Assembly: GCA_001642005.1 (NCBI GenBank)
Contig: LWCA01000008.1
Span: forward strand, 1-64,000
Length of the DNA stretch: 64,000 bases
DNA from: Intoshia linei
Lineage: Eukaryota; Animalia; Orthonectida
Direction of reading: 5' to 3'
Under the pieces are notes generated by a model. That model was not told where the DNA came from. It saw only the letters and a program-made list of their open reading frames with translations, and made no database searches. Positions 3,077 through 63,910 of this stretch are shown here, piece after piece. Position 1 is the first letter of the stretch; each line of letters starts with the position of its first letter. Both the position numbers and the translations under genes were made by a program.

Positions 3077-4514
3077 TATGAGTTCTGATTATTCGAAAAT
3101 TTGAAAAACCGGTTATCGAATAATTTTGGTTATTTGAACAACGATTATCCGATTAATCGGAATTTAAAATTTTTAACATAAAAACCAATAATTCTTACTT
3201 ATATTACTTACTTGTATAACTTATATATATAATATGCTACGCGATTTTTGTTTGTGTGTGTGTTCCACTTTATTGAAATAACTACCAGTCTTAGAATTTT
3301 ATAAAGTCCACATCGTTTATTTCAATAACTACCAGTCTTAGAATTTTATAAAGTCCACATTTCAATTACAGTTTTTTCCGAGGCATATAATAAGATAAAT
3401 TTCAACCTCCCAAACTCACATCTTACGGGTCAAAAACTCAATTGTCCTTCTTTTTGAAATCAAACGAGTTGGAGAATTTAAAAAAAGTATAAAATTGTCC
3501 TTCTTTTTGAAAATCAAACGAGTTGGAGAATTTAAAAATATATATACGCTGATACGGATTTTAAAATCATAAACATTATCATAAATTGCTGATGCGGATT
3601 TTAAAATCATAAACATTATCATAAATTTAAATTTAAAAAAATACACTGATGCGGATTTTAAAATCATAAACATTATCATAAATTTAAATTTAAAAAAATT
3701 ATATTTTCAAAGCCAAAACCAAAATTACTCTTATTTTTTTAATGAAAACAGCCGTAGAATTTAAAAAAAATTTACAGGTAGTACACAAAGCCGTCTTAAG
3801 CCACTTCCTGGCCCTGGGCTAAGCAAAGGACCGGAGGCCCTTCAAAATTTTGAGCGAAGCAAAAAAGTATTTGTAAAAAAAATTTCGAGCGAAGCGATAA
3901 AAAAATTTAGGGCCCATTTTTTGAAAATTAATAAGATCAAATCAAAGATTTCCTACTTTTTTTTGAATATTCACTTAATAGAAAGGTTTTAATGTTTAAT
4001 ATTATCATTTGAAACAGTTTTTATGTCAATATTATATGATGAACATTGTAGAATATATTTTAAATTGAATATTTACCAGAACTTTGATTCTTTAAATGAT
4101 TTTCTTTCTAGCTATTTGAATTCCCACACTTCAAAACTTACATATATTACATTATATATATATATACACATGTATAAACTGTTTTTTAAGATATAAGTGT
4201 GAAGTTCTTTTTAATAAATTGGTGACCTCTTTTTAAGATATAAGTGTAAAGTACTTTTATTAATTTGGGGACTTTTTTTAATTAGTGGCCCTGGGCTACA
4301 TCCCATATTGCCCATTTCTTAAAACAGCTCTGGTGGTATAGTTGTATTCTGTTAACACACACAAAAAATTTCAATCCGAATAAGTGATGACTTCACAGTT
4401 AAAAAAGCGTTTTAGTATTTATATATAAATTTTTGAAAATCCGATTATACGAAATATATTCCGATTATTGTAAGCGATTAACCGGGTTTTCGATTAATCG
4501 GATATCATTCCCTA
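3077..4514. mobile_element. Nested cluster: outer hAT-like element containing a Helitron fragment (~3205-4430), which itself contains a hAT MITE
   Basis: Perfect 8-bp TSD gttcttat (3069-3076, 4515-4522); CGATTA-rich subterminal repeats at both ends; right terminus CATTCCCTA. Confidence 0.7.
3786..4332. mobile_element. hAT-type MITE (family B)
   Basis: TIRs CAAAGCCGTCTTAAG / CTTAAAACAGCTCTG; TSD gtagtaca/gtggtata interrupts the Helitron consensus ACAGGTGGTACAGTTG; inverted sister copy at 23051-23482. Confidence 0.85.
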
Positions 4515-5465: not shown

Positions 5466-8400
5466 ATGATGGAATCACGAGAAAATAAAGAAAAATTATC
5501 TGAAACCAATTTCACACCTCATTTTATATCAAACTTATTATCGAATAAAAAAAAGGAAAATTTAAAAACAAGTTTATCAAGTATTCAAGTATCTCATTTA
5601 TCGAAAAATATCAAACAAAACATGTTTTACAATAAATATATAATGTTGCAAAAACCACAATTTCCAATGAAGAGGAGAAGAAGGACTATTTTTAAAGACC
5701 ATCAGTTGGAAATGCTCGAAAGTACATTTTCTATTAATCAATATCCCGACATTGTTTTGAGGTTGAAAATGGCCATGGTGCTCGGTTTACAAGAAGAAAG
5801 AATTGAGGTTTCTATTTTAATAAATTATATAATTATGCATAAATTTTATTATTTTATTTTTTTCAATTTTGAATTAACATGTAAATGAATCTTTATATTT
5901 TAATATATATTATATAATTTTCTTTATTAATTTCATTTTGCACATGTACTTGAAAAAGTAAGTACAATGGCACAATACTCAGTGTTTTTCAAGTGGATGA
6001 AAAACCTTATTTCTATATTAATAATCCAATGATTATTTCAAGTGTTTAGTCAAAATCTGCTTGATTATATTATTGAATATACATTACACCAAGATGTGTA
6101 AATTCTTTATCTGCATTGTTAATTTAGTTTAATTTAACCCTTTACTAGTCGCGCTTTTTCAAAACGTAAACAGTCGCAAGAGGACAAAAATGGCCGTTTT
6201 TAATGAATGAAAAAGTGACACGATGTAATAAACAAATTTACATATAAAATATTTAATTACAATGATAATAATAAATATGACGCTGATTGATATATTTAGT
6301 TTTATAAATCTGTCTTTAAAGAAATTTGAACATACAATATTTGAATGATTTTTGCAAACGTAGACCGCGCAGATTTTGCACAAATTATTAGTTTTTTTGA
6401 ACTCATTGGTCACACAAAAATAACATTTTCGTCTTTTTACAGCAATTGATGTAGCTAAAATTCATAATTATTCTATTTATATATAAAAATTACATGTATG
6501 TTGAAAAGATAAATTTCTGATTAATTTGTTTTTGTTACATAAAGATTTTCCAAGTTGTCTCAAGTATAATGTCCTCGGCATATATACATTTCCCGATTTA
6601 TAAAGAATATAACTGTTTACAGCCAAAATATTCAATAAACCTTGAAACAAACAATGAGGCCATCCTATAGTTTTGTTTTTGGTATTGTATTCGTTACATA
6701 AATAATCAAGAACGTCAACACCTCCTTTGTTTTTATTATANTACATGGATGTTGATAAGATAAATTTGTGAATAATTTGTTTTCGTTACATAAAGATTTT
6801 CCAAGTTGTCTTAAGTATAATCTCCTCGGCATATATACATTTCCCGATTTATAAATAATGTAACTTTTTACAGCCAAAATATTCAATAAACCTTGAAACA
6901 CTCAATGAGACCATCTTCTAGTTTTCCTTTTTGTACTGTATTCGTTACATAAATAATCAAGAACGTCAACACCTCCTTTGTTTTTATTATAAAATAATAT
7001 AAGGTTAGGTTTTTTTTATCCTCTTCGTTGAAATTAATGCTATCATGCTTTGTATGAGATCAAATTNNNNNNNNNNNNNNNNNNNNNATCCTATAGTTTT
7101 GTTTTTGGTATTGTATTCGTTACATAAATAATCAAGAACGTCAACACCTCCTTTGTTTTTATTATAAAATAATATAAGGTTAGGTTTTTTCTTTGCATCC
7201 TCTTCGTTGAAATTAATGCTATCATGTTTTGTTGAGATCAANAACGTAGACCGGACATATTTTGCACAAATTATTAGTTTCTTTGAACTCATTAGTCACA
7301 CAAAAATAACATTTTCGTCTTTTTACAGCAATTGATGTAGCTAAAATTCATAATTATTCTATTTATATATGAAAATTACATGGATGTTGAAAAGATAAAT
7401 TTCTGAATAATTTGTTGTCGTTACATAAAGATTTTTCAAATGTCTCAAGTATTATCTCCTCGGCATATAACAATTCCCGATTTATAAATAATGTGTAAAA
7501 AGTATTAAACAAACAATGAGGCCATCCTATAGTATTCCTTTTTGTATTGTATTCGTTACATAAATAATCATGAACGTTAACACCTCCTTTGTTTTTATTA
7601 TAAAATAATATAAGGTTAGGTTTTTTCTTTTTATCCTCTTCGTTGAAATTAATGCTATCATGCTTTGTATGAGATCAAATTAACAAATTTTCTAGGTTTG
7701 GGACAATAAGAAGCTAGTGTAATTATTCCTAGATGGCCGAAAATGGTAGAAAAAACAGACCGGTTTTTTGTAGACACAAATTGAGGCGCTAATTCCCTTT
7801 TATTTTTTCTAATGGTACCACATAATGTTATTTTTTTTCCCACAACTGAAACGCCAATGGTATCGATGTAAACCAATTATCCATGTTACATTGCGCCCAC
7901 TTCCCCAATAAGGTTTCAAAATTCGTAGAATAACATTTATAGGTTTATTTTTGCTTTTATCGTCGTCTTTTCCAAGGTATAATTCCAAATTACAACAGTA
8001 AAATGTAGAATCTACAAAATTATATAATTTTAGTCCATATTTTCAAGGCTTCGAAGGTAAATACATTTTAAAATTGCATCTTTCTCTAAATGAGACCATG
8101 GTTTCATCCAATGTTAAGTTATTTCCAGGTTCATAGTTGTTTTGGAAATTTTCCACAAAAACATTAAATATTTCCCTTATTGGTGCAAGCCTGTCATTCT
8201 TTTTTCTTTGTTCTCTAGTGTGTATCTCGTCAAATCTAATAGACCTGGACAAAAATAAAAATCTATTATAAGACACCACGGTTCTAATTGCATCAATACC
8301 GCATCCATCACTTTCCCACTGATCAACAAGTTTATTTGTATTATTAGTAATATTATACATATACTTATTATGTATTATATTTAAGCTCAATTTAAATCTT

Positions 8401-9020
8401 AAAAATAATGTGACATTTTAATTATTTACTATGGCTCATGTCAAAATATAATATGTTAATTTATTTTTATTCATAAAAAACGGACAAAAATGTCCTCTGC
8501 GAGTAGTAAAGAGTTAACTTGTTTTACATAATAACTTTATAAATAAGTATTTTTTACAAATCTTAAATCAACGAAATCAAAGAAATTATTGATATAACTT
8601 GATTTATAAGGCGTTACTCTTTGGGTTAAACAAATTATGTATTTTTATACATTAACCTTATTCACTGTAGTATAAAATTGTTATTTGTCTATTTCAATTT
8701 TACATGTCACATTTAACAATATTTTTTAATCTACCGATGTATTTTACCGACTGTTTAATCATTTAGGGTTTATTTAGAATTTATAATTTAATTTATTTTA
8801 TAGTATCAATTGATTATATCTAACAGATATTTTCTTATGTTATTTTTATTCAATTTGTACAATTTATATTTAGGTTTGGTTCAAGAACCGAAGAGCGCGT
8901 GATAGACGAATCAAAAAATCTTTACCGGAAAGTCGACAAGATACCATATTGAATACTTTACATTCTTCTCAAAAAATTAATTACTCTTTCAATAATTTTC
9001 GTGTTAATAATTTCAATTAA
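5466..9020 (+). CDS. gsc: Goosecoid-like PRD-class K50 homeobox protein; 2 exons (5466-5807, 8874-9020), 162 aa
   Basis: Splicing GAG|gtttct...tttag|GTTTGG gives the complete 60-aa homeodomain KRRRRTIFKDHQLEMLESTFSINQYPDIVLRLKMAMVLGLQEERIE|VWFKNRRARDRRIK. It has K50, the RTIF arm and E46 (EVWFKNRRA, as in Gsc; Otx has QVWF, Pitx RVWF). The intron is at the PRD-class 46/47 position. There is an eh1-like HFISNLL near the N-terminus. Confidence 0.88.
6138..8513 (-). mobile_element. Degenerate piggyBac transposon inside the gsc intron
   Basis: TTAA at 6134-6137 and 8514-8517. Terminal inverted repeats CCCTTTACTAGTCGC / GCGAGTAGTAAAGAG. Transposase fragments LTLDETMVSFRERCNFKMYLPSKP, GTIRKNKREL, YNKNKGGVDVLD and a C-terminal Cys-rich CKICAVYVCKNH. 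Multiple frameshifts and stops. Confidence 0.93.
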
Positions 9021-11244: not shown

Positions 11245-12671
11245 TGTGTGTTACCGTTTATTTAAAAAATTAACAATCATAGAATTAAAAAACTCAATTT
11301 CTAATACAGCTTTTCGCGAGTGATGTTTATAGCTATGTTTCATTTTTCGAAATTTAGTCCTTCAGAATCAAAAAAATAATTTCCCTTTTTTTTAAAAATA
11401 AAATCAAAGTTGAAATTAAAAAAACTAAAATTCTGGGACTCGTTTTAATATCATTAACATTGTCGTAGATCGCAGCCTCAGAAACTTACATTTTCATGAT
11501 CAAAATTACTTTTTTATATATAAAAAGTCTTAAAATTTTATAAACCAAAAATTCTGGGATAGATTTTAAAATCATAACCATTATCATAAATCACAATATT
11601 AAAAAAGTGCATTTCCACAATAAAAACCACAGATTACCATTTTTTTAAAAAAAATTGCAGTTGATACAATTTTATCCAGTTAATACCCAAAAAAATTTCA
11701 ATATGATAAAGTAACACCTTCACGGTCAAACACTTTATTATTCATTTATTTTGGAATTATTTCATTAATAAAAACCAAATAAAATATATAATAATTGAAA
11801 TAATGAATGATTCTAGAATTTAAAAAATAGATCATTCTGGAATACCTTATTCCATTTGATCTAGATCCAGAATGTAGATTCTCGAGACAAAATTTCAGCA
11901 TCAGAAATCTACGCATTGTAAGTGAAAAATATAACTTTTAATACATTTTCAACCAATATTTTTTAAATTTTTAATTATTCTTCCGCCAATTTCAAAAAAG
12001 GTGGGATTTACCGTATACAATGTATAGTATACATTTTATACTATACATATTTGAAATATAGAAATATGGGTTTTAATCCCATAAATTGATTTCATTTGTT
12101 TTTTTATCATTGCTACACGCAATTTCTAATTTTAAATTATGATAAAATATATGAAACTGTAAAAAAAAAAATATATGTAAAAAATTGTTATAAAAACAAA
12201 AATTTATATTATAATGCTAGCCGCACATTCCATAATTGTGACCGCAAATGACCCGCGAGCAGTGGCGTATCTAGGATTTTCAGTCATTGGGCGAAATAAT
12301 TATTAAGGGGCCAAACACATATAATGTATTCAAATTGGAATTTTTATATTATGTTCATTGAATATTTCTATCTATAATAATAATTTGTATTTTTATATAT
12401 ATTGCCAGGGGTCTTATTTAAATCGCAATAAACCACTAATTAAATTAATAATAATCAACAATGAACATTTTATAAATGCAACATTTTTGTATGATTATTT
12501 GTTGAAATTGAGCAGGTTAACCGGTATATTAAACTTGAACTTAAATTTTGATGTCGACCTTAATCAAACACACTAGAAGATTTTATGAATAATTTTCTAA
12601 CGAAATCGGTTCAAAGAATTTATAAAAAATAGAATATATGTAGTACATTTTATTTACACTGAATTTAAGTT

Positions 12672-21420: not shown

Positions 21421-22344
21421 ATGTTGTCTGAAAAATTAAAAAGTACAATCGAAACAGAAATTTATGAAACTGAATCAATATCAGATGAAATAATAACCGA
21501 AGAAAAAGAACAAGTTGAAGATGGATTTGAATTTTTAGAAACTTCTCCAGATGATTTTGAACGATTTAAAAAATATTTTTCTTCAAAAAACTTTATTCAA
21601 TCACAAACCGAGCAAAATTTATTAAATACAAATTCATTAAATCAAGAATTATGGAGTGCTCAATCGTTTTTTAATACAGATAAAAATGAAATTACTAGAA
21701 AGGATGATATTCATAACGAAATTAATCAAATTTCGACAATACTGTCAAATTTTCCAATCGACGCGTATACATTTAAATGTATTTCTCCAATAAACAGAAA
21801 CAAGAATGAATTGAAAAATTTTTTTGAAAATTGTAAGGGTATAAATGAAAAAATTTGTCAAGTTGAAGAAAGATTAAAAAATGTTGAAACTTTTATTGGA
21901 TTTTCAAATTTACCAAATTCATCGCTCAATGACTTGACTAAGGAAATTAGTAATATCAAAGCAATGTTAAGTACTGTCGATTTGGATAATTTGAAATCTG
22001 TTAAAAATTTTTTAAATGTTTTTATTCAGTTGCCACCGAATTTAACTAGCGATTTATTTAAAATTACTAAATTGAGTCAAGATGTTGAATCCATCAAGTA
22101 CATTTTAAATGTTGTGCCGTCTCTTGTTGATCGATTAAAAAGTCTTAATTTATTGAATTCTGAAGCTAAATCCAATTGGAATATGCTTTCTGATATTTTA
22201 CCTACCCAAAATTGTACAAATGAACACATTTCTAGTATTAAACAACAAATTGAGGATATGAATGTTAATTTAAATTATTTTCAAGAAATACTTATTAGTA
22301 ATGCTCAAAAATTAAATGTTAGATTGAATAAATTAAATGTTTAA
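21421..22344 (+). CDS. DCTN2: Dynactin subunit 2 (p50 dynamitin), single exon, 307 aa
   Basis: N-terminal EIYETESISDE (cf. DVYETSDLPED), FERFK, KICQVEERLKNVE, LSTVDLDNL, VPSLVDRLKSLNLLNSEA and a C-terminal coiled coil ending RLNKL, all collinear with dynamitin. Confidence 0.8.
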   Translation: MLSEKLKSTIETEIYETESISDEIITEEKEQVEDGFEFLETSPDDFERFKKYFSSKNFIQSQTEQNLLNTNSLNQELWSAQSFFNTDKNEITRKDDIHNEINQISTILSNFPIDAYTFKCISPINRNKNELKNFFENCKGINEKICQVEERLKNVETFIGFSNLPNSSLNDLTKEISNIKAMLSTVDLDNLKSVKNFLNVFIQLPPNLTSDLFKITKLSQDVESIKYILNVVPSLVDRLKSLNLLNSEAKSNWNMLSDILPTQNCTNEHISSIKQQIEDMNVNLNYFQEILISNAQKLNVRLNKLNV

Positions 22345-25239: not shown

Positions 25240-25854
25240 TTAGGTCGTTTCATAGGTAATGTCGTTTTTATTATAACTTTATTATAAATCATTATATCTT
25301 TACGAATATTTACTGTAAGTGCGTTATTTTTTTATTTTTACGAAATATGGACAAATGTGTATTCGATGAAAGAGTAATTTCCGATGACAAACATATTTTT
25401 AATTAGTATTTAAAGAAACAAGTTGGATGATTATGATGGTCATATCAGACATATTTTACTTTATGAGTTTCATATGGGGCATACCGTATCGGAAACTAAT
25501 GAAAATATATGTAATGTTTATGGCAAAGATGCTATCAACATACGAAAAACTCAAAGATGGTTCTTAAAGTTCAGACAAAACAATTATAACCTAGAAAATG
25601 TCCAACGTTCCGGTAGACCTAGTCTAGTAGATGAAGACAAAATTAAAGAGGAATTGATAAAATCTCCAATTCAAACATGTACGTCATTATCAAATGTTGC
25701 TGGTTGTTCAAGAACAAGTGTACATCGAGCTCTTAAAATGATGAATAAATCGAATAGATGTGGTATTTGGGTNACGAAAATAAATTTGAACATTTTTGAA
25801 ATTAAAAAAGAAGACCATTACACTTCTGATCTAAATATCCTTCCAAAAAAATAA
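25240..25854 (+). mobile_element. Truncated mariner element (Mos1/SETMAR-type HTH region)
   Basis: TA|TTAGGTCG terminus; HIRHILLYEF...NICNVYG...QRWFLKFR...RSGRP...HRALKMM...GIW; similarity ends at the N (25773); no DDD domain. Confidence 0.9.
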
Positions 25855-48999: not shown

Positions 49000-51813
49000 C
49001 TAACTAGAAAATATATTAATTGTTTCAGGTTTCACAATTATAATTGATGGCCTAGGATGATCTCTGTACATATGATCGTAAATTAATTTAATCATTTCTT
49101 TATTGTGCAGAATTCCCACATGAGTATTTTGATCAAATTGTTGATGATATCTAAAATATTTTGATTTGCTCCATTTGGTACACCGCGTTAACGATTCATA
49201 GTTTACTGTACCATCAGCTTTTTCATAATACAACTTAGGTTTACCATGCGGATAATCGGTATGTCTATAATCTAATTGTTTTATCGTATATAATCCACCT
49301 CCGTAGAAACACAAAGTATCAACTTGAGGCTCTTTAAGATCGTTAACTAGTGACTTCACTGCTTTCCATCTGTTCAATCCATATGGAATATTAACGGATG
49401 TCAATAATTCATCCATATTATTTATAGTATAATTTTTGTTCTTTGTCAATACAAATGGCTCTTGAGATTTCCATTTAGTTGTAGATGGAGCTGCCGCTAT
49501 AGGTACATTCCAAGACGTTTCTAATTTTTTCCACTGTTCGGGTTTTGTATAAAATATGCCAAAGCTGTCTCCTAAATATATCTTGTATTATTTATATTTA
49601 ACATGAATATACCCAATAGCATGCCTTTAATGGTTTTCACAGAACCACTGAACGGACCACTTATTGGAATGTATAATTTTATATGATCATTTTTCCATTT
49701 TTGTGATTTATGATTCAAAAAATACAATGCTACTATTGTACCAAAAGAATGAGCCACAATTGTAACTTTTTTTTTACTTACGTTGTACATTTTTTCAATT
49801 AATTCTCCCACTTTATCATAGTATGCATCGTCTAATTTAAAAAAATAATTATCTTATAATTTTGTCTATTACTCGGAATTTTTCTAAAGTCGTACGGAGC
49901 GGCAGCAATATCGATACCATTTTCATATTGTCTCAGTAAGAAAAAATTGTAAAACGTATGGAAAAGCTCAGCTAGATTGCATGATATATATTTCAAATTA
50001 ATTTTAAAATATTACTACGACGTATTTTCAATGTTGATAAATCTACAATAGCATCCATTCTACCAAAACTATCATTATGTATGGTAATATTAACGCCTGG
50101 AGTATTATTGCCATATTTCAAATTGTGGTTATCGTAATGTAACCTATAAATAATTATTAGATAATTATTAGCCTATGTCAAAAAACACGTTTTTTATGAA
50201 TAAACAAAGGCCATAGGTAAATATGAGAAATTTTGTGTATGTTACGAATATTCATATGAAAATATGGATAATCTTGTCAAAGGTTTAAAATTGGGATTAA
50301 GTTTTTGAATTATTAATATAATTACGTTGAAACAATCCTAACTTATATAATATGCAACGCAATATTTATTTGTGTGTGTGTGTTCCACTTTATTAAAAAA
50401 ACTACCAGTCTTAGAATTTTATAAAGTCCACATTTCAATTACAGTTTTTTTCCGGGACGTATAATAAGATAAATTTCAACCTCCTAAACTCACATCTTAC
50501 GGGTCAAAAACCCCAATTGTCCGTCTTTTTGAAAATCAAACAAGTTGGAGAATTTAAAAAAATAAATACACTGATACGGCTTTTAAAATCATAAACATTA
50601 TCATGAATTTAAATTTAAAAAAATTATACCTCAGGGCCAAAACCACAAATTCCTTTTTTTTTTTAATGAAAAAAGCCTTAGAATTTAAAAAAATTTCAAT
50701 TCGAATACGTGACGACTTCACGGTCAAAAAAGCATTTTAGTATTCGTATAATTTTTTTCCGAAATATTTTATTAAAATAAAAAATGTGAAATAATTAACG
50801 GGCCGAAAATTAAAAAAAAAATATTATTCTGATATAGCTTATTCCAGTTGATATAAATACAAAAGTTCAACCCCAGACATTTACGCATTGCCGATGAAAA
50901 ATAATTTTTAATATATTTCAACCAATATTTTTTAAATATTTCGATTAAAATAAAAATTAAAAATGTAAATATTGATCCTATTCTTTACACAAATGTTAAC
51001 AAAACTAAATTAAGATGGAATAATTCACTTTAAAGTAAAAAGTAATGTGATATGATGGTTCCATCTGAAACAAATTTGGGAACCACTCCTTTAAATGATT
51101 GATAATAGTGAATACAGTAAAATCTCGATTATGTAAATTTTAAAACGTTAAATTTTAGTTTATTTGGAGTTGAATTAGAGTGTCCATAAGTACTAAATAC
51201 GTACTCCATAAATACCATAGATAATTTTAGTCAATATTTTACTTGTAATATTTCACTTTCTTAATAAAGTGAAGTTTTAATAATTTTATATTTTATAAAA
51301 ACACTTTATATCGTTTAATTTGGATCACATTAAATTTATTAATTAATAAAAATTAATTATTTTTTAATTATGACAAAAAAAATTATAATTCTAAAGAGAG
51401 TTTATTGATTTTTACAAACATTTGGAAAATCATAGTGGTTGTACGTAATACATAACAGTCAACCTAGTTATAATATATAAATTATAAAATTATTATAATT
51501 TTAAATCAAGTTGCTCAAGGTGTTAAAATTAGTCGCTAAAAATGGATTACATCATTCTTTCTTTAAAGCAATCGAATTGTGGCCATAATTCAAATTTGAA
51601 GTTTATCCACTCGGTATATCTATCATTATTTTTCAAGCAATACCATGATAGTTTAGCATCTTTTAGAGTATTATCGAGTTTAGAACCACCAAATCCTGGA
51701 ACTAAATATTAAAGTACAAAACGAAAACATTTACAAAAAAGGATGGGCATATTTTCCGATAATGCTAATTTTAACATATAACATAATAGAGCAGAAATAA
51801 TACTTAACTTCAT
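49000..51813 (-). CDS. Secreted LCAT / lysosomal phospholipase A2 (group XV)-family acyltransferase, about 6 exons
   Basis: Signal peptide MKLSIISALLCYMLKLALS; PILFFPGFGGSKL; lid cysteines (WYC...FDC); AAPYDFRK; nucleophile elbow AHSFG; GPFSGS; DGTV; THVGIL. The Ser-Asp-His triad is intact. Confidence 0.92.
50336..51467 (+). mobile_element. Non-autonomous Helitron with both termini in an LCAT/LPLA2 intron, carrying a secondary insertion (~51113-51430)
   Basis: A|TCCTAACTTATATAATATGCAACGC ... TGTACGTAATACATAACAGTCAACCTAG|T; part of the insertion recurs inverted at ~53452-53590. Confidence 0.82.
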
Positions 51814-54800
51814 AATGAACGAAATTATATAATACTTTATCTAATAAAAACATAAATAATTATGTATTAATATTAATTACAATATTGACTAAACGTAAAT
51901 TTCTCAATATATATATAAATTAATAAAGTATTTCAAAATAATGTAAATATAGTCAGTTTGATATAATCTGAATATACTATAAATGTTATCATTCATTTCA
52001 AATTAGCCAGTTTAAAACATAATGATATAAAATATAATAAGAAATAATAATTAAGACAAAAAACTTGTTTAGACAATAAGTCATATTATTTCACTTTTTC
52101 ATCATATAATTTTTGGATTTACGATTTTATTTTATTTATTATTTGCTAGCAAACTCTCAAGTACTATATTAAACTTTTGTAAAAAGTACTGAGTTAATGT
52201 GTACTTAGTTTTACTATTACAAAAACTCAGTACTTAATTTTGAACCTCATTTATTTTACGAGTCACTTATTTTTGAAAATTATTTATTTTGCCAATTAGA
52301 TTGGTTTTTTAAACAATGCATTAAAAAATTACATTAAATAAATAATTAAATTATCAATACCTGCAACTAACGCAACAATTGAAAGATTATTTTCTGCGGT
52401 GGGGACCAATTTTATATTATGATGAAAATTAAATTATAATAAACTAACTTGACTGTTATGTACTTCGTACAAACATCATCTTAGCTCTGCCGAGGGCGGA
52501 CATTTTTATTCTTCCAGAAAAATAAATTAAGTAAGGAAATTTAACCTAAAAATGCTACTATTCACTATTATAAATTATTTAAATAAGTCGTTCCAAACTT
52601 GTTACACGTGGACCCGTCATATCACATTACTTTTGAATTTAAAGTGAATTATTGCATGTTAAATTTATTTTGTTAACATTTATGTAAAGAATTTTCAAAA
52701 AAATGGTTATCCCATTTTTTTAATTTATTAGACAGAACTTCTGTATAATATTAAAATTAAAGTAAAAACAGTCTGTAATGATGAATGTAGCAGGATAAGT
52801 AAAGAGCCTTTATAATAACAAGATATTTACAGATGTTAATTTAAAAATAATAACACGTGATAAATGTAAATAAACAATTTAATCTTCATAGTGATCACAT
52901 TGACATCACTACACCTCCCACACAAAATCCTTAAAATAGACAGAGCGGTTCGTTTTCTTTTTCTTGGTTTATATTGATTTTGTTGTTTACTTTATATTTT
53001 TTATATGGCATTAAAAGTATAATTATAAATTCTACACTACAACATAAATATTTACACAGGATTTGACAGGAATTTAGTTAAAATGTTAATTCTACATAAA
53101 AAATAAAATGAATACTCAACTGTTTATATAAGACTAAGTTGATTGTTATGTACTATGTACAATCAGTGGTAATCAATAAATTATTGCAATAGCAATAATT
53201 GCAATAAATTTATTGCAATAATTTATTTTTGATAAAAAATATATTGGAGCAATAATTTAAAATATTTCAACAAAGTTATTATTAAAGTTTTATTAGTTAA
53301 CTAATAAAGATCACTAAACTTACTTATTTACTTATATACTAAACTTAAAAATATATTATCACTCAAAAATGTACTTTTCAATAAAATTTTTATAATTTTC
53401 GTCATCTGCCTACTCTAAATCGAAATAACAAATAACAATATAGTAATTATNTATTAAAACTTCACTTTATTAAGAAAGTGAAAAATTACAAATAAAATAT
53501 TGACTAAAATTATCAATGGTATTTATGGAGTACGTATTTAGTACTTATAAAAATACGTACTTTTGTTAAAATAAGTACTTATGGACACACTATTTTATTT
53601 AATGATATGGGTAAAACATTGTTATCTGAAAGTTCATGTTATAGCAGAGTGGATAATTTGTATACCGATTTGGACATCTTTTTATTTAAGATGAACTAAT
53701 CTGAGTTCCTTTGTGCCAATCGTTACAGAAAGTAAACAAATTTTTGGATTTAATAAAATTTAGAATTTGGAAAATATAATTTGAAGTATAGTTTTGTATT
53801 TCGGCTTTTGGAAACATCCTATTGTACACTGTACGTTGGTTCGATATTAAAGTTAATAGATAATATATGTATAATAATATGATGAAATCTTTGAATAAAT
53901 ACAAACACGTACACGTATATAAATAAATGTAATATTTGTTACTACACATAATAAATTATTCACTGTTTACAACGAATTCTAATGACATACTAACCTCAAA
54001 TCCAAGTATCCAAAGTGTTACATATGGATCCTGGCGAGTCCACCAAATAATTTATTTTTATTATTTGGAATTTAAATAAAATTACGTCGATCGACATTAT
54101 GATCTGACAATTCTGTAAAATCACATAATACATATTATTTACATAATTATAATGTAGATTATTTTCTATGAAATAAAAACAGTATGCTTCCATTTCTGAA
54201 ATTGACGCCTTCGCAGTAAGAAAAGCATATTATGGCTTCAATAGTAACCCTTATTTTGTTAATTATTTTAATTAAAATTGAAATAAAAACTATTATATAA
54301 TATACTAGTTGAGTGTTATGTACTACGTACATTGTACGTCGTACAAACAGCATCTAGCTTGCCGATGGCTCATTTTTATTCTACACAAAAAATATATTAA
54401 AGTTGAAAATCTAACTTAAAAATGCTGCTATTCACTATTACCAATCGTTTAAAGGAGTGGTTCCCACATTTGTTTCACGTGGAACCGTCATATCACATTA
54501 CTTTTTACTTTGAAGTGAATAATTTCCCAAAAAAAAGTGTATACTGTGAATTAGTTTTTTGAACATAAAACTTTAACTTAAAAACTAAATGACCTGCGTC
54601 AAATGGCTTTTAATTGGAAAATCTTGAGTAGATATATAATAAGTTAATATTGTTACTAATTTGTATACAACTCTATTTAGCTTAATAGTTTTGTATTTTA
54701 GTTATATAGTCCGACCCCGTTTTTCGGCAAACCTCAGAGTGGATATACTCGTATTTTGGAACAGTTTTACAATCTCAAAATTAACACACCACGTTTGATT

Positions 54801-54840: not shown

Positions 54841-55086
54841 CTATCCATACCTAAATAAAAAAATACAAATAATTTATAGAATCATTTCTAAAAACATTTC
54901 TTACCTTGGTCTATTCATTTCCATCAACCTTCCTTTTATTATGCTGACAACATCGTTAAAATTTTTATCTTGACTCGTTTCAATTTCATTATAAGGATTA
55001 ATAATATCGTCAATATCCATTATTCTTCCGTTGACACAACTGATAACCAATATTAATGAAAAAATTAAAAAAATGTTTTTATGCAT
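54841..55086 (-). CDS. NPY/NPF-family neuropeptide precursor A; exons 54905-55086 and 54841-54850; 63 aa
   Basis: MHKNIFLIFSLILVISCVNG|RIMDIDDIINPYNEIETSQDKNFNDVVSIIKGRLMEMNRPR^YG*. A phase-2 intron splits the last Arg codon (CCA AG|gtaa...tttag|G TAT GGA TAG), the hallmark intron position of NPY/NPF genes. Confidence 0.85.
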
Positions 55087-57282
55087 TTTAATATTCAAAA
55101 TTATATCGAATTTATGCAAAATAATTAACAATGAAAATATTTAAAAAATTTACTTTTACGTCAAACATTTTATAATTTTTAAATTTAATTAATCCACATT
55201 TAGTGGTGGATTAAATCAAATTGATTGAATGGAAAGCTGCAATATTAAGAGTGTAAAGTCAAATATTTAATTAATCAAAATTAAAGGTAATACTTATTGA
55301 ATCGAAATTAAATTTAATCAATAATATGAATAAATTTCAAAAATTTTAGTTAATATTATCATAAATTAATAAATAATGGATAGTTGCTTGATTTCTAGAA
55401 AAAAGGAAAGTAGATGTAAAAATACTATTAACACAGAATTTTTTTATTTAACAGTCACAATTTGCCATATATTTCATTCTTTAGATGGATATGTTCAGTT
55501 TAAAATTGCATGCACTTGAATACTATGTTCTTTAATAATGAGCGAATGAAATTTGTGTGAATGTGCGTGATACAATTTTTATTGAAATAATACATTTGTA
55601 TGTTGATATATGCAGTACATTAAGGTGTGTCTCGTGATATTTCAAGAATATTAAGTAATTATTATTGTTGAACTATCATAATGCTTAAATAATTAAGTAC
55701 TTTTTTACGCATAGTGTATGTAGACTAGGGGTTAGTGATTGTGATTTCCCAGGAAAAATAAAAATTTTTTATTCATATATAACATAAAAGCATTACAAAT
55801 TATAGAGACCTTAATTAATTTTAGAAACCAAAAGAAATTTAATTAGTGAAATAACACGAATCTAGATTGAAATTTACAAATTTAATTAAAAAAAATTTTA
55901 TTTATTTTAGATTGTTGAAAAAGTGTTTCAAAACACACATAATATTGATAAATTTGTCTGTTAAACGCGTTCTACGTTTTGTAACGAAATATTACTCGAA
56001 ATTTTTTTAAAATAGAGGCCTCATTTTTTCTATTTGAGCATTAAAAAAATTATTTTCTATTTAATATATTTAATATTAATACATACTATTTATATAATAA
56101 CATTTATTATGTATCATATTATTTTTTGTATTACATTTAATTTGTCAAGTGAAGAGCCTTGGATGTGTGGCTAGGGACTATGTGAAATTATGAAAAACAT
56201 TTAGGGTATTTTTCGTTTTCGGTTGACATGGAACTTTTTACCTTCGGCTATGGGTAACAAGTTTTTAGTACAAATAGTATCACCGAAATTTCATTTTTAT
56301 TTAATTTTTATTTACATCATTAAAAATATTCATTGCTGTGTTATAAATATTGTCACTATGCATATTATTTAAATTTTGATTTAATATTATTTGAGCAGTG
56401 CTACCCAAACGGGTCCTTGTGTTTTTTTTAAATTATAGGGTTCTTTTCTTTTCCTAAAAAGGCTAACTGGGGTTTTGAACATGAATATGTACGTTTCCAA
56501 GACTAAACTACGACGATATTAATTATAACTAAAATAATTATTTTAAAACGCGTCCTAGGAATTATGTGATTTAAAGCTGTAGGACTGATTTTATTTTATT
56601 TTTTAATAAAAAAGAGTAATTTTGGGTTTTGGACCTAAAGGACTATTATAAATCTCAGAGTATATGTTCATTAAACATTGTTCAATACCTTTCAATGCCA
56701 AACCATAGGCGACTGCTGTGGTAGTAGATATATGGCTGGGACGGCATTTGGTTACAAAACTAAGAACGGTATATGCTTCATAAACACCACCATGGATTCT
56801 AAAAATGTATTGGAAAAGTATTTCCTGTCTACTTAGTACAAAAAGCATTCTAGCTCGCAGAGGTTGGACATTTTTATTATACCAAAAAAAAATTCAATAA
56901 TAAAATCTTAATTAAATATGCTGCTCATTATTAACAATCATTTAAAGGTGTTTCCAAACTTATTACACGTGGACCCGTCAAAGCAAACAAAGCATATTAG
57001 ATAAGTATGGATTTTGTTTAAAGTCGCAATGTTCGAATCATAGGATGTTTATGACTATTACAGTAATGCCATTTATCATTAACGTTTAAAAAAATATCAA
57101 TATTATTATATAAGTGTTATTGATTATAATTTATAAATTATTCTCCTGGGAAATTCTAACGTTTATACAAATCACATAAGGATAATATATATTTATTTGA
57201 AATTTCGACATTTACTAAGAGTATTAAGTAATTAAGCTATTCTACATACAATGTAATTATTGATGTTAGTTTTTAATATATT

Positions 57283-57803
57283 CTATCCATATCTAAAATA
57301 AAAATACATTGATACAAGTCAATTAAATGTAATATTAAGACATGATATTAGGAAATAGAAATTTTACTGTCTAAAAGCAAAAATAATTTTAATATTTAAA
57401 TAAACAATGTAAAGTTTTCATTAATTAATAATTCGTCACTATCCCATTTTGGTAAAATGGTAATACCAGAAATTCAAAATATATTTTTAATATTTTAAAA
57501 AATTCTAATGAAATTCTAATAATCCACACAATGGACATTAAAAATATTACACATGATATACATGTATGTCACAAATGTACTTGTATCATTTACATGTGAT
57601 GAAATAATAATAATATTTTACCTTGGCCTGTTCATTTCCATTAATCTTATTTGTATCGTTTTTAAGACATCATCAAAACTTTCATTTTCTACAGAACCAT
57701 CCTCATAAGAATTAATAAAGTCATTAATATTAACTATTCTGCTATATATTGTAGTACCAACTACAATTATAATCACTAAAAATACAAAAAAATTATATTG
57801 CAT
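57283..57803 (-). CDS. NPY/NPF-family neuropeptide precursor B; exons 57622-57803 and 57283-57292; 63 aa
   Basis: MQYNFFVFLVIIIVVGTTIYS|RIVNINDFINSYEDGSVENESFDDVLKTIQIRLMEMNRPR^YG*; CCA AG|gtaa...tttag|A TAT GGA TAG; same 182+10 nt coding exon structure as copy A. Confidence 0.83.
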
Positions 57804-62200: not shown

Positions 62201-63910
62201 CTTTAAGACATATTTAATTTTTGAAACAAAGGGTAAATTGGTGTTTTTGACCCTGAAGTTATACGTTTCTGACGCTAATATAAAATAAAATGTTAATGAA
62301 TTTAAAACGCGCCCCAGAATGTTGGTTTTTATCAAATTTTTGTGTTAATTTTTTTAAACAAAATGGGAAATTGGGTTTCTGACCCTAAAGGACTCAAATT
62401 CTAAAACTAAAAAATAGATAAAAATACGCTCTGGGAAAAACTATATTAGAAATTGAAAAATTTTTCAATAAATGGTTACATATACAGAAACACACACACA
62501 TTCATTTTTTGTTGTTTTTGAAACGCACAACCCGAATCAACACACACCTATAAGAATTGAAAGGTTTAGTGCTATGTCTCGTAAATATTATCAAAAAATT
62601 ACGGTATATTGTCCGGATCTATGGCGCATTGACCGACAGCTTTTGTGACATTTACCAATAATACATGATTAGTTCCAATCAACAAGTTCACAAGCTGTGG
62701 TATTCCTCCTGATTTACGAATAGACGATCGATTAAATTGATCTTTAGCCAATTCTGCTAATGCACCAACTGCATTAATTAAAACCTAAACATTTGTATTC
62801 AAGTAATAAAATAATTTACAATTTCAGGTTGATTATTCAATAAAGAGACAAGTCTTTCAATAACTTTTAAATCCCTAAACTTTTTAACATTTTCAGGGCT
62901 AATTGAACATTTCCAAATGGCACCTGTGGCAGCGGACAAAATCTCCTTATTGTTTGATGAATCATTGATTAAAGCCACTAAAGGTTTCAATCCATCGTGT
63001 TGGCGAACTAGATCTCGACTTTCCACATCTTCAGCACACTAAAAATTTGATTCACTACCAACTAACAACTAATTTACCTTAAAAATAGCATTGGCTGCGT
63101 GCATTTTTAACTCTTCGTTTTTACTATTTAGATGTTTAACTAAGTCTTGAATCATTTCTTCTTTACGAATGGCGATTCTGTAATATTTTTCACTGGCGCA
63201 TTCTTCTAAAGTACCCACTGTTGGTATAAGCATGCGATCATTAGAAGATTTTAATAATCTAGCCAATATCTTGATAGCTCCGGCATCGCTGATTGCCTTT
63301 TTATTCGATTTACTTTTTGAACAACTCCACAAAGCGAGAACGCCACACCTAGCCAATTCAAAATTTTTTTCATTTTCCAGCATTGATTTTTTACTTACTT
63401 TTGCAGTAGTATCTTCAGCAGGTAATTTATGCAAAAGTGAAACCTTAATAAATACACTTAATTTTGATAAAATATTAAAATACAATTTTATCGATTCCAC
63501 CATTTTGCCGTACTGTCGTTCTAGCTCTTTTAAATTTTGCTACATTGGAAATAGTTTCGGCGGAAAGGCATTGCAAATCTTTATCAGGATATTCCAAAAT
63601 TTTAACCATTACCTTTAAACCTCCCAAATCTGCAATCACTCTTCTAATGTGTGGATTGATTGATATTTCTTTCAAAATTTTTAAAGATCCAATCTAAACG
63701 AATATTAAAATCTAGACCAACACTGTTAAAACATTAGATACACGTTTATTTCAATAATAAAACCTTGCACTTGATTTCATGCGTATCCAAAAGATTTATC
63801 AATATTTCCAATCCACCGACATCTTTAATAGCATATTGACAACTTTCAGTGGCTAAATTGAATTCACGCATAGAGCATAAAGCTATAATTGTAGCAGTTT
63901 GATTTCCAGC
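59293..63910 (-). CDS. ARMC4: Armadillo repeat-containing protein 4 / outer dynein arm docking complex subunit 2; 3' exons only, 5' part lies beyond the window
   Basis: ARM-repeat exons [108 protein letters not shown]...[26 protein letters not shown]...LALANE. Confidence 0.95.
60509..60936. mobile_element. hAT-type MITE (family A) in an ARMC4 intron
   Basis: Perfect TSD ctgattag (60501-60508, 60937-60944); termini CAGTGG / AGAGTCGCCACTG; inverted sister of 1588-2012. Confidence 0.85.
61633..62097 (-). mobile_element. Internally deleted Helitron with both termini in an ARMC4 intron
   Basis: 5' TCCTTACTTATATAATATGC; 3' TGTACGTAGTACA...CAACCTGG|T (fits CTRR). Confidence 0.8.

Follow-up and report, generated by a model that had tools for sequence, protein, structure and literature searches.

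A tandem pair of probable minimal NPY/NPF-family neuropeptide genes in the orthonectid Intoshia linei

Neuropeptides of the NPY/NPF family (NPY, NPF, PYY and PP; Pfam PF00159) are defined by a C-terminal RxR(F/Y) motif followed by Gly (PMC6389622; PMC7314547). NPFs count 36-40 residues and end in RPRFamide (PMC7314547). NPY/NPF genes are marked by a phase-2 intron that splits the codon of the Arg preceding the terminal Phe or Tyr, a conserved feature (PMC7314547, citing Mair et al. 2000) whose position sets them apart from PrRP/sNPF genes (PMC7314547). Like the genome studied here, other spiralian genomes hold several NPY/NPF-like paralogues, as seen for NPY-1 to NPY-4 of Platynereis dumerilii and for the npy expansions of planarians. 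Here we analyze a tandem pair of short genes, A and B, located in a stretch of 64,000 nucleotides (the window) at the start of contig LWCA01000008.1 of Intoshia linei. Orthonectids are among the most reduced bilaterians, and I. linei parasitises nemerteans. We consider it probable that A and B are real, tandem-duplicated two-exon genes that encode minimal precursors of secreted NPY/NPF-family peptides.

Reading of the minus strand together with the listing of open reading frames (ORFs) places genes A (57803-57283) and B (55086-54841) head-to-tail, with two exons each (Table 1). The two short signal-peptide ORFs ending in RLMEMNRPR that a sequence-only reading of the window had described were reproduced base for base. 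The same applies to the GT inside the last Arg codon and the downstream AG which, when joined, give 63-residue precursors ending in RPRYG-stop: both joined frames measure 192 nucleotides (63 residues plus stop), terminate in RLMEMNRPRYG-stop and thus carry the RxR(F/Y) motif with its Gly donor for amidation. Only 10 coding nucleotides of either gene lie in exon 2. The open frame of gene A contains no in-frame ATG upstream of position 57803. Its donor reads GTAAAATA and its acceptor ...TTATTTTAG / ...TATTTTAG, with a T-rich tract (11 pyrimidines out of 15); for gene B the donor is GTAAGAAA and the acceptor ...TTATTTAG (12 out of 15). The intron of gene B is close in length to the median of 57 bp reported for I. 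linei (PMC6543705). Both N-termini are strongly hydrophobic (maximum Kyte-Doolittle mean of 3.4-4.0 over 10 residues), a small residue occupies position -1 of the predicted cleavage site in both, and cleavage there would leave mature peptides of 41 and 42 residues.

Table 1. Positions of the gene pair, of related and candidate partner genes elsewhere in the genome, and of other coding pieces in the window (first column of positions refers to the window unless a contig is named).
Feature	Position	Strand	Description
Gene A exon 1	57622..57803	-	182 nt; ATG at 57803; runs to first two bases (AG) of last Arg codon
Gene A predicted signal peptide	57741-57803	-	~21 residues; 39 further residues follow in exon 1
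Gene A tail codons, RLMEMNRP + AG	57622..57647	-	residues as in gene B, with synonymous differences
Gene A intron	57293..57621	-	329 nt; GT..AG; phase 2; inside Arg codon
Gene A terminal coding segment	57283..57292	-	A TAT GGA TAG: completes Arg, then Tyr, Gly, stop
Intergenic spacer A/B	55087..57282		2,196 nt; not conserved between copies
Gene B exon 1	54905..55086	-	182 nt; ATG at 55086; runs to AG of last Arg codon
Gene B predicted signal peptide	55027-55086	-	~20 residues; 40 further residues follow in exon 1
Gene B tail codons, RLMEMNRP + AG	54905..54930	-	counterpart of gene A tail
Gene B intron	54851..54904	-	54 nt; GT..AG; phase 2
Gene B terminal coding segment	54841..54850	-	G TAT GGA TAG: completes Arg, then Tyr, Gly, stop
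Canonical NPF gene L033/L044	C2313, match 3567-3659	-	best Pfam NPF score, 34.4 bits; AG^GT in Arg codon
Canonical NPF gene L034	C2345, match 8850-8948; exon 1 = L034:1504-1692	-	Pfam Hormone_3
Canonical NPF-like gene L035	C1156, match 8140-8217	+	AGA TTT; no GT donor after Arg codon
PHM (peptidylglycine monooxygenase) gene	C1376:8016-8830 and 12392-12508	+	both PHM domains of the amidating enzyme
Candidate receptor L029	C1685:7522-8439	+	multi-exon peptide receptor; paralogue of C3445 gene
Candidate receptor L025/L031	C3445:46661-47600	+	multi-exon peptide receptor; paralogue of C1685 gene
Homeodomain exon	5466-5888	+	other coding piece in window
piggyBac-type DDE transposase fragment	8043-8390	-	other coding piece in window
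Dynamitin-like single ORF	21421-22344	+	other coding piece in window
Mariner (HTH_48) transposase fragment	25423-25854	+	other coding piece in window; contains an N
LCAT-like exon	49000-49449	-	other coding piece in window
Armadillo-repeat exon	63069-63503	-	other coding piece in window

Over both of its strands, the 64-kb window contains no more than two R-P-(AG^GT) sites (the caret marks the exon boundary) and two AG^R-(Y/F)-G-stop motifs. The two donors pair with the two motifs on the same strand, in the correct order and at distances of 54 and 329 nucleotides, while the chance of encountering such a motif within 400 nucleotides is about 0.002 per site. Comparing the copies, the exon 1 proteins are 43% identical but their last 11 residues are the same, a run of identity with p ~0.001 upon shuffling. 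These last 11 codons differ by five synonymous and no non-synonymous changes, against 9 synonymous and approximately 25 non-synonymous changes in the rest of the mature peptide (Fisher p = 0.0026), which bears out the earlier proposal of purifying selection on the C-terminal tail. Across the full alignment the non-synonymous divergence (dN) is 0.38 and the synonymous divergence (dS) 1.37. No alignment was found between the upstream regions, the introns or the 3' flanks of the two genes; nevertheless, both retain a T-rich acceptor and the 10 coding exon 2 bases, although these lie much farther from the donor in A than in B. The genome contains exactly two copies of the pair sequence, both outside interspersed repeats. 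A and B are old duplicates kept by protein selection, which is strongest at the C-terminus.

Short interspersed repeats (approximately 150-200 nucleotides, 73-86% identical) are present in the spacer (for example at about 56830-56990) and just downstream of gene B (54333-54525). Each recurs at least five times in the window, for example around 2.3, 13.7, 27.5, 52.5 and 61.7 kb, and these repeats are probably members of an abundant non-autonomous element family.

The genome of I. linei measures 41.6 Mbp (PMC9218549); the assembly searched here comprises 41,603,068 bases at approximately 25% GC. A Pfam scan for Hormone_3 returned three other loci, on contigs C2313 (34.4 bits), C2345 (28.9 bits) and C1156 (25.5 bits). 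All three show a signal peptide followed by a peptide of the form PP..F...E..Y(L/M)N....YY...SRPR, with the Pfam match stopping at RPR, and a profile built from them matches PYY, NPF and NPY among solved structures. Platynereis NPY-4, ending in ...SRPRFamide, resembles these canonical genes. The C2345 gene is most like the pair: a signal peptide and a peptide ending in ...RPR, similar in total length (exon 1 has 63 codons there, and 60 codons plus two bases in A and B), are followed by an AG^GT donor within the Arg codon, an intron of just 45 nucleotides and G TAT GGT TAA, which reads R-Y-G-stop with the Gly directly before the stop. It differs from the pair by matching Hormone_3, by keeping PPLPP and the Tyr residues, and by its location on another contig. 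Within 3.5 kb downstream of the C2313 gene no exon with Tyr or Phe followed by Gly was found; the only look-alike acceptor (422-nucleotide intron) leads to R-Y-Q-stop, without an amide donor, and this copy may be decaying or may have its last exon located elsewhere. Read through, the C1156 gene ends in ...SRPRFILYIGL-stop without Gly; it may have lost its intron, may yield an unamidated product or may be a pseudogene.

An intron between the second and third base of the terminal Arg codon, with GT..AG exactly there, can thus be read in A, B and the C2345 gene. The claim that such a phase-2 intron is an NPY/NPF signature holds, as it is stated in PMC7314547 and the Pfam-verified C2345 gene has the intron at the same position. 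A number of results, given here and with the homology searches and receptors below, nonetheless weigh against our reading of the pair. To begin with, the splice junctions of A and B, like that of C2345, are predicted from genomic sequence. Furthermore, the pattern CCNAGGTW..TAGRTWYGGNTAR (that is, P-(AG^GTW)...TAG^R-(Y/F)-G-TAR) occurs in the 41.6-Mb genome only at A, B and C2345, but a control with the reversed pattern yields six genome-wide matches against these three, and therefore the bare DNA pattern is not rarer than chance. The element that is not due to chance is that all three real matches fall on signal-peptide ORFs ending in RPR. Finally, the C2345 gene corresponds to an annotated hypothetical protein, A3Q56_01118 [Intoshia linei], with the same sequence up to the RPR of exon 1. 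The public model differs from the short-intron reading: it uses a 143-nucleotide intron with a better pyrimidine tract and runs on for 31 residues beyond ...SRPRF, with no Gly. This gene therefore offers a possible acceptor besides that of the short terminal exon; the latter may represent an alternative 3' splice site, or the public model may reflect the preference of a gene finder for the longer frame.

It might be argued that A and B are expressed but not spliced as proposed, ending in ...NRPR through the in-frame TAA or joining another downstream exon, and hence giving no RPRY-amide. In both genes AGG TAA stands directly at this point, and the unspliced ORFs end in ...RLMEMNRPR, and the annotated C2345 paralogue has indeed been modelled with another acceptor. 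Yet the sole downstream element common to A, B and C2345 is AG^R-TAT-GGN-stop, found at 329, 54 and 45 nucleotides in surroundings that have diverged, and no alternative phase-2 acceptor in A or B gives a conserved extension. An unamidated ...RPR end is also without known parallel in the NPY/NPF family. We regard this explanation as unlikely.

The family assignment itself is supported. Intron position, the R-Y-G-stop exon and the C-terminal motif agree with the proposed NPY/NPF type, but the peptide bodies have no NPY/NPF profile match; because of this, the term rests on gene architecture and C-terminal motif. Like the known members, A and B each have one long peptide directly after the signal peptide (41-42 residues against the usual 36-40), a C-terminal RxR(F/Y)-Gly (RPRY in the pair) and the phase-2 intron that splits the Arg codon ahead of the aromatic residue. 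A further likeness would be the predicted fold, in which a C-terminal helix runs out into a flexible tail: AlphaFold, with moderate confidence, places a helix at residues 43-57 of gene A and at 31-48 of the canonical L033, followed by a free tail in both. Unlike the known members, the pair has no dibasic site and no C-terminal flanking peptide after the Gly, nor the second coding intron that usually accompanies them, and the Gly is directly followed by the stop. The paralogues of Platynereis and planarians are still recognizable by sequence, whereas the pair is in tandem, much more divergent and restricted to its lineage.

Most of the remaining adverse results come from homology searches, for which the queries consisted of exon 1 only; exon 2 residues were part of no query, and the joined frames were compared locally. 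The pair gives no match to Hormone_3 (PF00159) in a Pfam scan at E <= 10, and none to solved NPY, PYY or NPF chains at the same threshold. A genome-wide search with a profile built from the canonical NPFs of I. linei itself does not recover it either. An hhalign comparison of the pair with the canonical peptides results in E = 4e-4 at a low probability of 34%, part of which comes from the signal peptides, and the C-terminally anchored BLOSUM score lies at z ~2 over shuffles (P ~0.02-0.03). The alignment shows that the Tyr residues at -10 and -17 are absent from the pair (R and V are found there) and that the Pro-rich N-terminus is missing (at most one Pro before the tail), whereas the canonical L033, L034 and L035 retain YY, Y and PP at these positions. 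Both peptides are moreover acidic instead of neutral or basic.

No relative of the pair was found in a word-indexed collection of 5.8 billion proteins, nor in a scan of 1.84 billion representative proteins. The latter brought up only two long proteins, repetitive and aligned to profile positions 19-37, which we judged spurious. Two weak Pfam matches of the pair, DUF5385 and NEMP, fall far short of the cut-offs and are noise from hydrophobic segments. Look-ups of exact products, among which entries from the genome of the window may be lacking, returned no match for exon 1 of gene A or for the annotated C2345 paralogue. Because no protein in the public collections searched matches the pair while its same-genome paralogue A3Q56_01118 is present there, the pair is unannotated, in agreement with the suggestion that gene predictors had missed it.

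Lacking similarity to NPY/NPF at the profile level, A and B might alternatively be genuine amidated members of a different RF/RY-amide family (NKY, sNPF/PrRP or luqin/RYamide) that obtained an NPF-like intron by chance or through exon capture. The lophotrochozoan NKY peptides, described as NPY paralogues, come close as they are long too (38-43 residues) and end in RY-amide, and one of the candidate receptors discussed below (C3445) is closest to the PrRP receptor. NKY peptides, however, end in LLRY or IMRY and not in RPRY. In sNPF/PrRP genes the peptides are short and the intron is of phase 1, in the N-terminal or central part (PMC7314547), in contrast to the long peptide and the phase-2 intron in the last Arg codon of the pair. 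The pair likewise has neither of two luqin-type features, the short peptide and the Cys-containing part. Luqin precursors consist of a short peptide plus a Cys-containing C-terminal part. Above all, intron position and terminal exon are the same as in the Pfam-verified C2345 gene, and we find membership of another family just as improbable as a different mode of splicing.

Returning to A and B as NPY/NPF-family genes, splicing, expression, amidation and receptor usage are predicted as follows. Transcription would proceed on the minus strand, and the phase-2 intron splitting the last Arg codon would be removed. Exon 1 would supply the signal peptide and one long peptide, and exon 2 would complete the Arg and add Tyr-Gly-stop. 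From the resulting 63-residue pre-peptide the signal peptide would be cut off before the conserved RI(V/M)(N/D)I, after which no convertase or carboxypeptidase step would be required. PHM/PAL would convert the C-terminal Gly to an amide, and peptides of 41 and 42 residues ending in ...RLMEMNRPRY-NH2 would be secreted. The predicted C-terminal helix could then present the RPRY-amide tail, flexible and under selection, to a peptide-binding G protein-coupled receptor (GPCR) of the rhodopsin type, while affinity or stability may be adjusted by the variable N-terminal two thirds. A minor possibility is monobasic cleavage at the conserved Arg, which would release LMEMNRPRY-amide; the usual rule for upstream basic residues is obeyed in gene A (Lys at P6), though not in gene B.

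The genome appears equipped for these steps. Besides the PHM gene (Table 1), three proprotein-convertase P domains are present (C3070, C65 and C2278), and because of these the Gly-stop design is not forced by convertase loss. Judged from its genes, the standard neuropeptide-processing toolkit is retained.

As to receptors, 59 exon-level matches to 7tm_1 were obtained genome-wide, in keeping with a reported total of 32 rhodopsin-type GPCR genes in I. linei. The best candidates would be the NPY-receptor-like genes on C1685 and C3445. For the C1685 gene, the nearest matches to the C-terminal exon are human NPY1R, NPY2R and NPY4R (E = 2e-16). A named-homologue search with this exon gave no match at E <= 1e-8, for which the length window and the database size are the probable explanation. 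An NPY-receptor-like candidate thus exists on C1685, but its exact type is uncertain as the middle exon is nearest to the NK1 (substance-P) receptor. The receptor class is accordingly soft, which is the last of the adverse points. Sequence similarity places at least one receptor of this genome in the RF/RY-amide group of GPCRs.

Other GPCRs considered as NPF receptors were rejected: L006 and L007 are galanin/allatostatin-A-like, L005 is kisspeptin/galanin-like and L004 is amine (5-HT)-like. Further amine receptors are found at L008, L011 and L017. In addition, two lineage-specific clusters of single-exon GPCRs were observed (L015/L016/L020 and L013/L021/L027/L030), within which L015 and L016 are a recent duplicate with 92% identity.

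More speculatively, the pair could be an orthonectid-specific NPF offshoot with a convertase-free precursor, diverged save for the receptor-binding tail, possibly since the peptides are secreted at NPF/NPY receptors of the nemertean host (acting for example on feeding or reproduction), instead of or besides the approximately 10 neurons of the parasite itself. We consider this scenario less probable still than the two alternatives above. The least credible view is that A and B are not genes at all: a very AT-rich genome (25% GC), the repeats between the copies and the fact that an unannotated pair was read from genomic DNA would allow for chance ORFs, decaying pseudogenes or interspersed-repeat fragments, but the only two genome copies lie outside repeated segments, both frames are intact, dN is lower than dS with solely synonymous changes in the 11-codon tail, and both retain their splice signals and the Gly-stop. 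We gave no weight to poly(A) and TATA signals, as chance motifs are expected at 25% GC.

The literature searched yielded no description of orthonectid NPY/NPF peptides. NPY/NPF genes and their paralogue expansions in spiralians are known; the species, a pair invisible to annotation and profiles, and a minimal precursor with Gly followed by the stop appear to be new.

The orthonectid nervous system consists of approximately 10 cells (bioRxiv 10.1101/235549). If the models presented here hold, at least five NPF-like genes have been kept in I. linei, three of which share a terminal exon with 10 coding bases. Gene finders would then skip or mis-model such an exon, as illustrated by the unannotated pair and by the annotated paralogue that lacks the amidation Gly, and intron position could be used to recover neuropeptide genes that profile searches miss. 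The short peptides are easy to synthesize, and together with the two candidate receptors they would make peptidergic signalling in a minimal nervous system, as well as host manipulation, accessible to testing.

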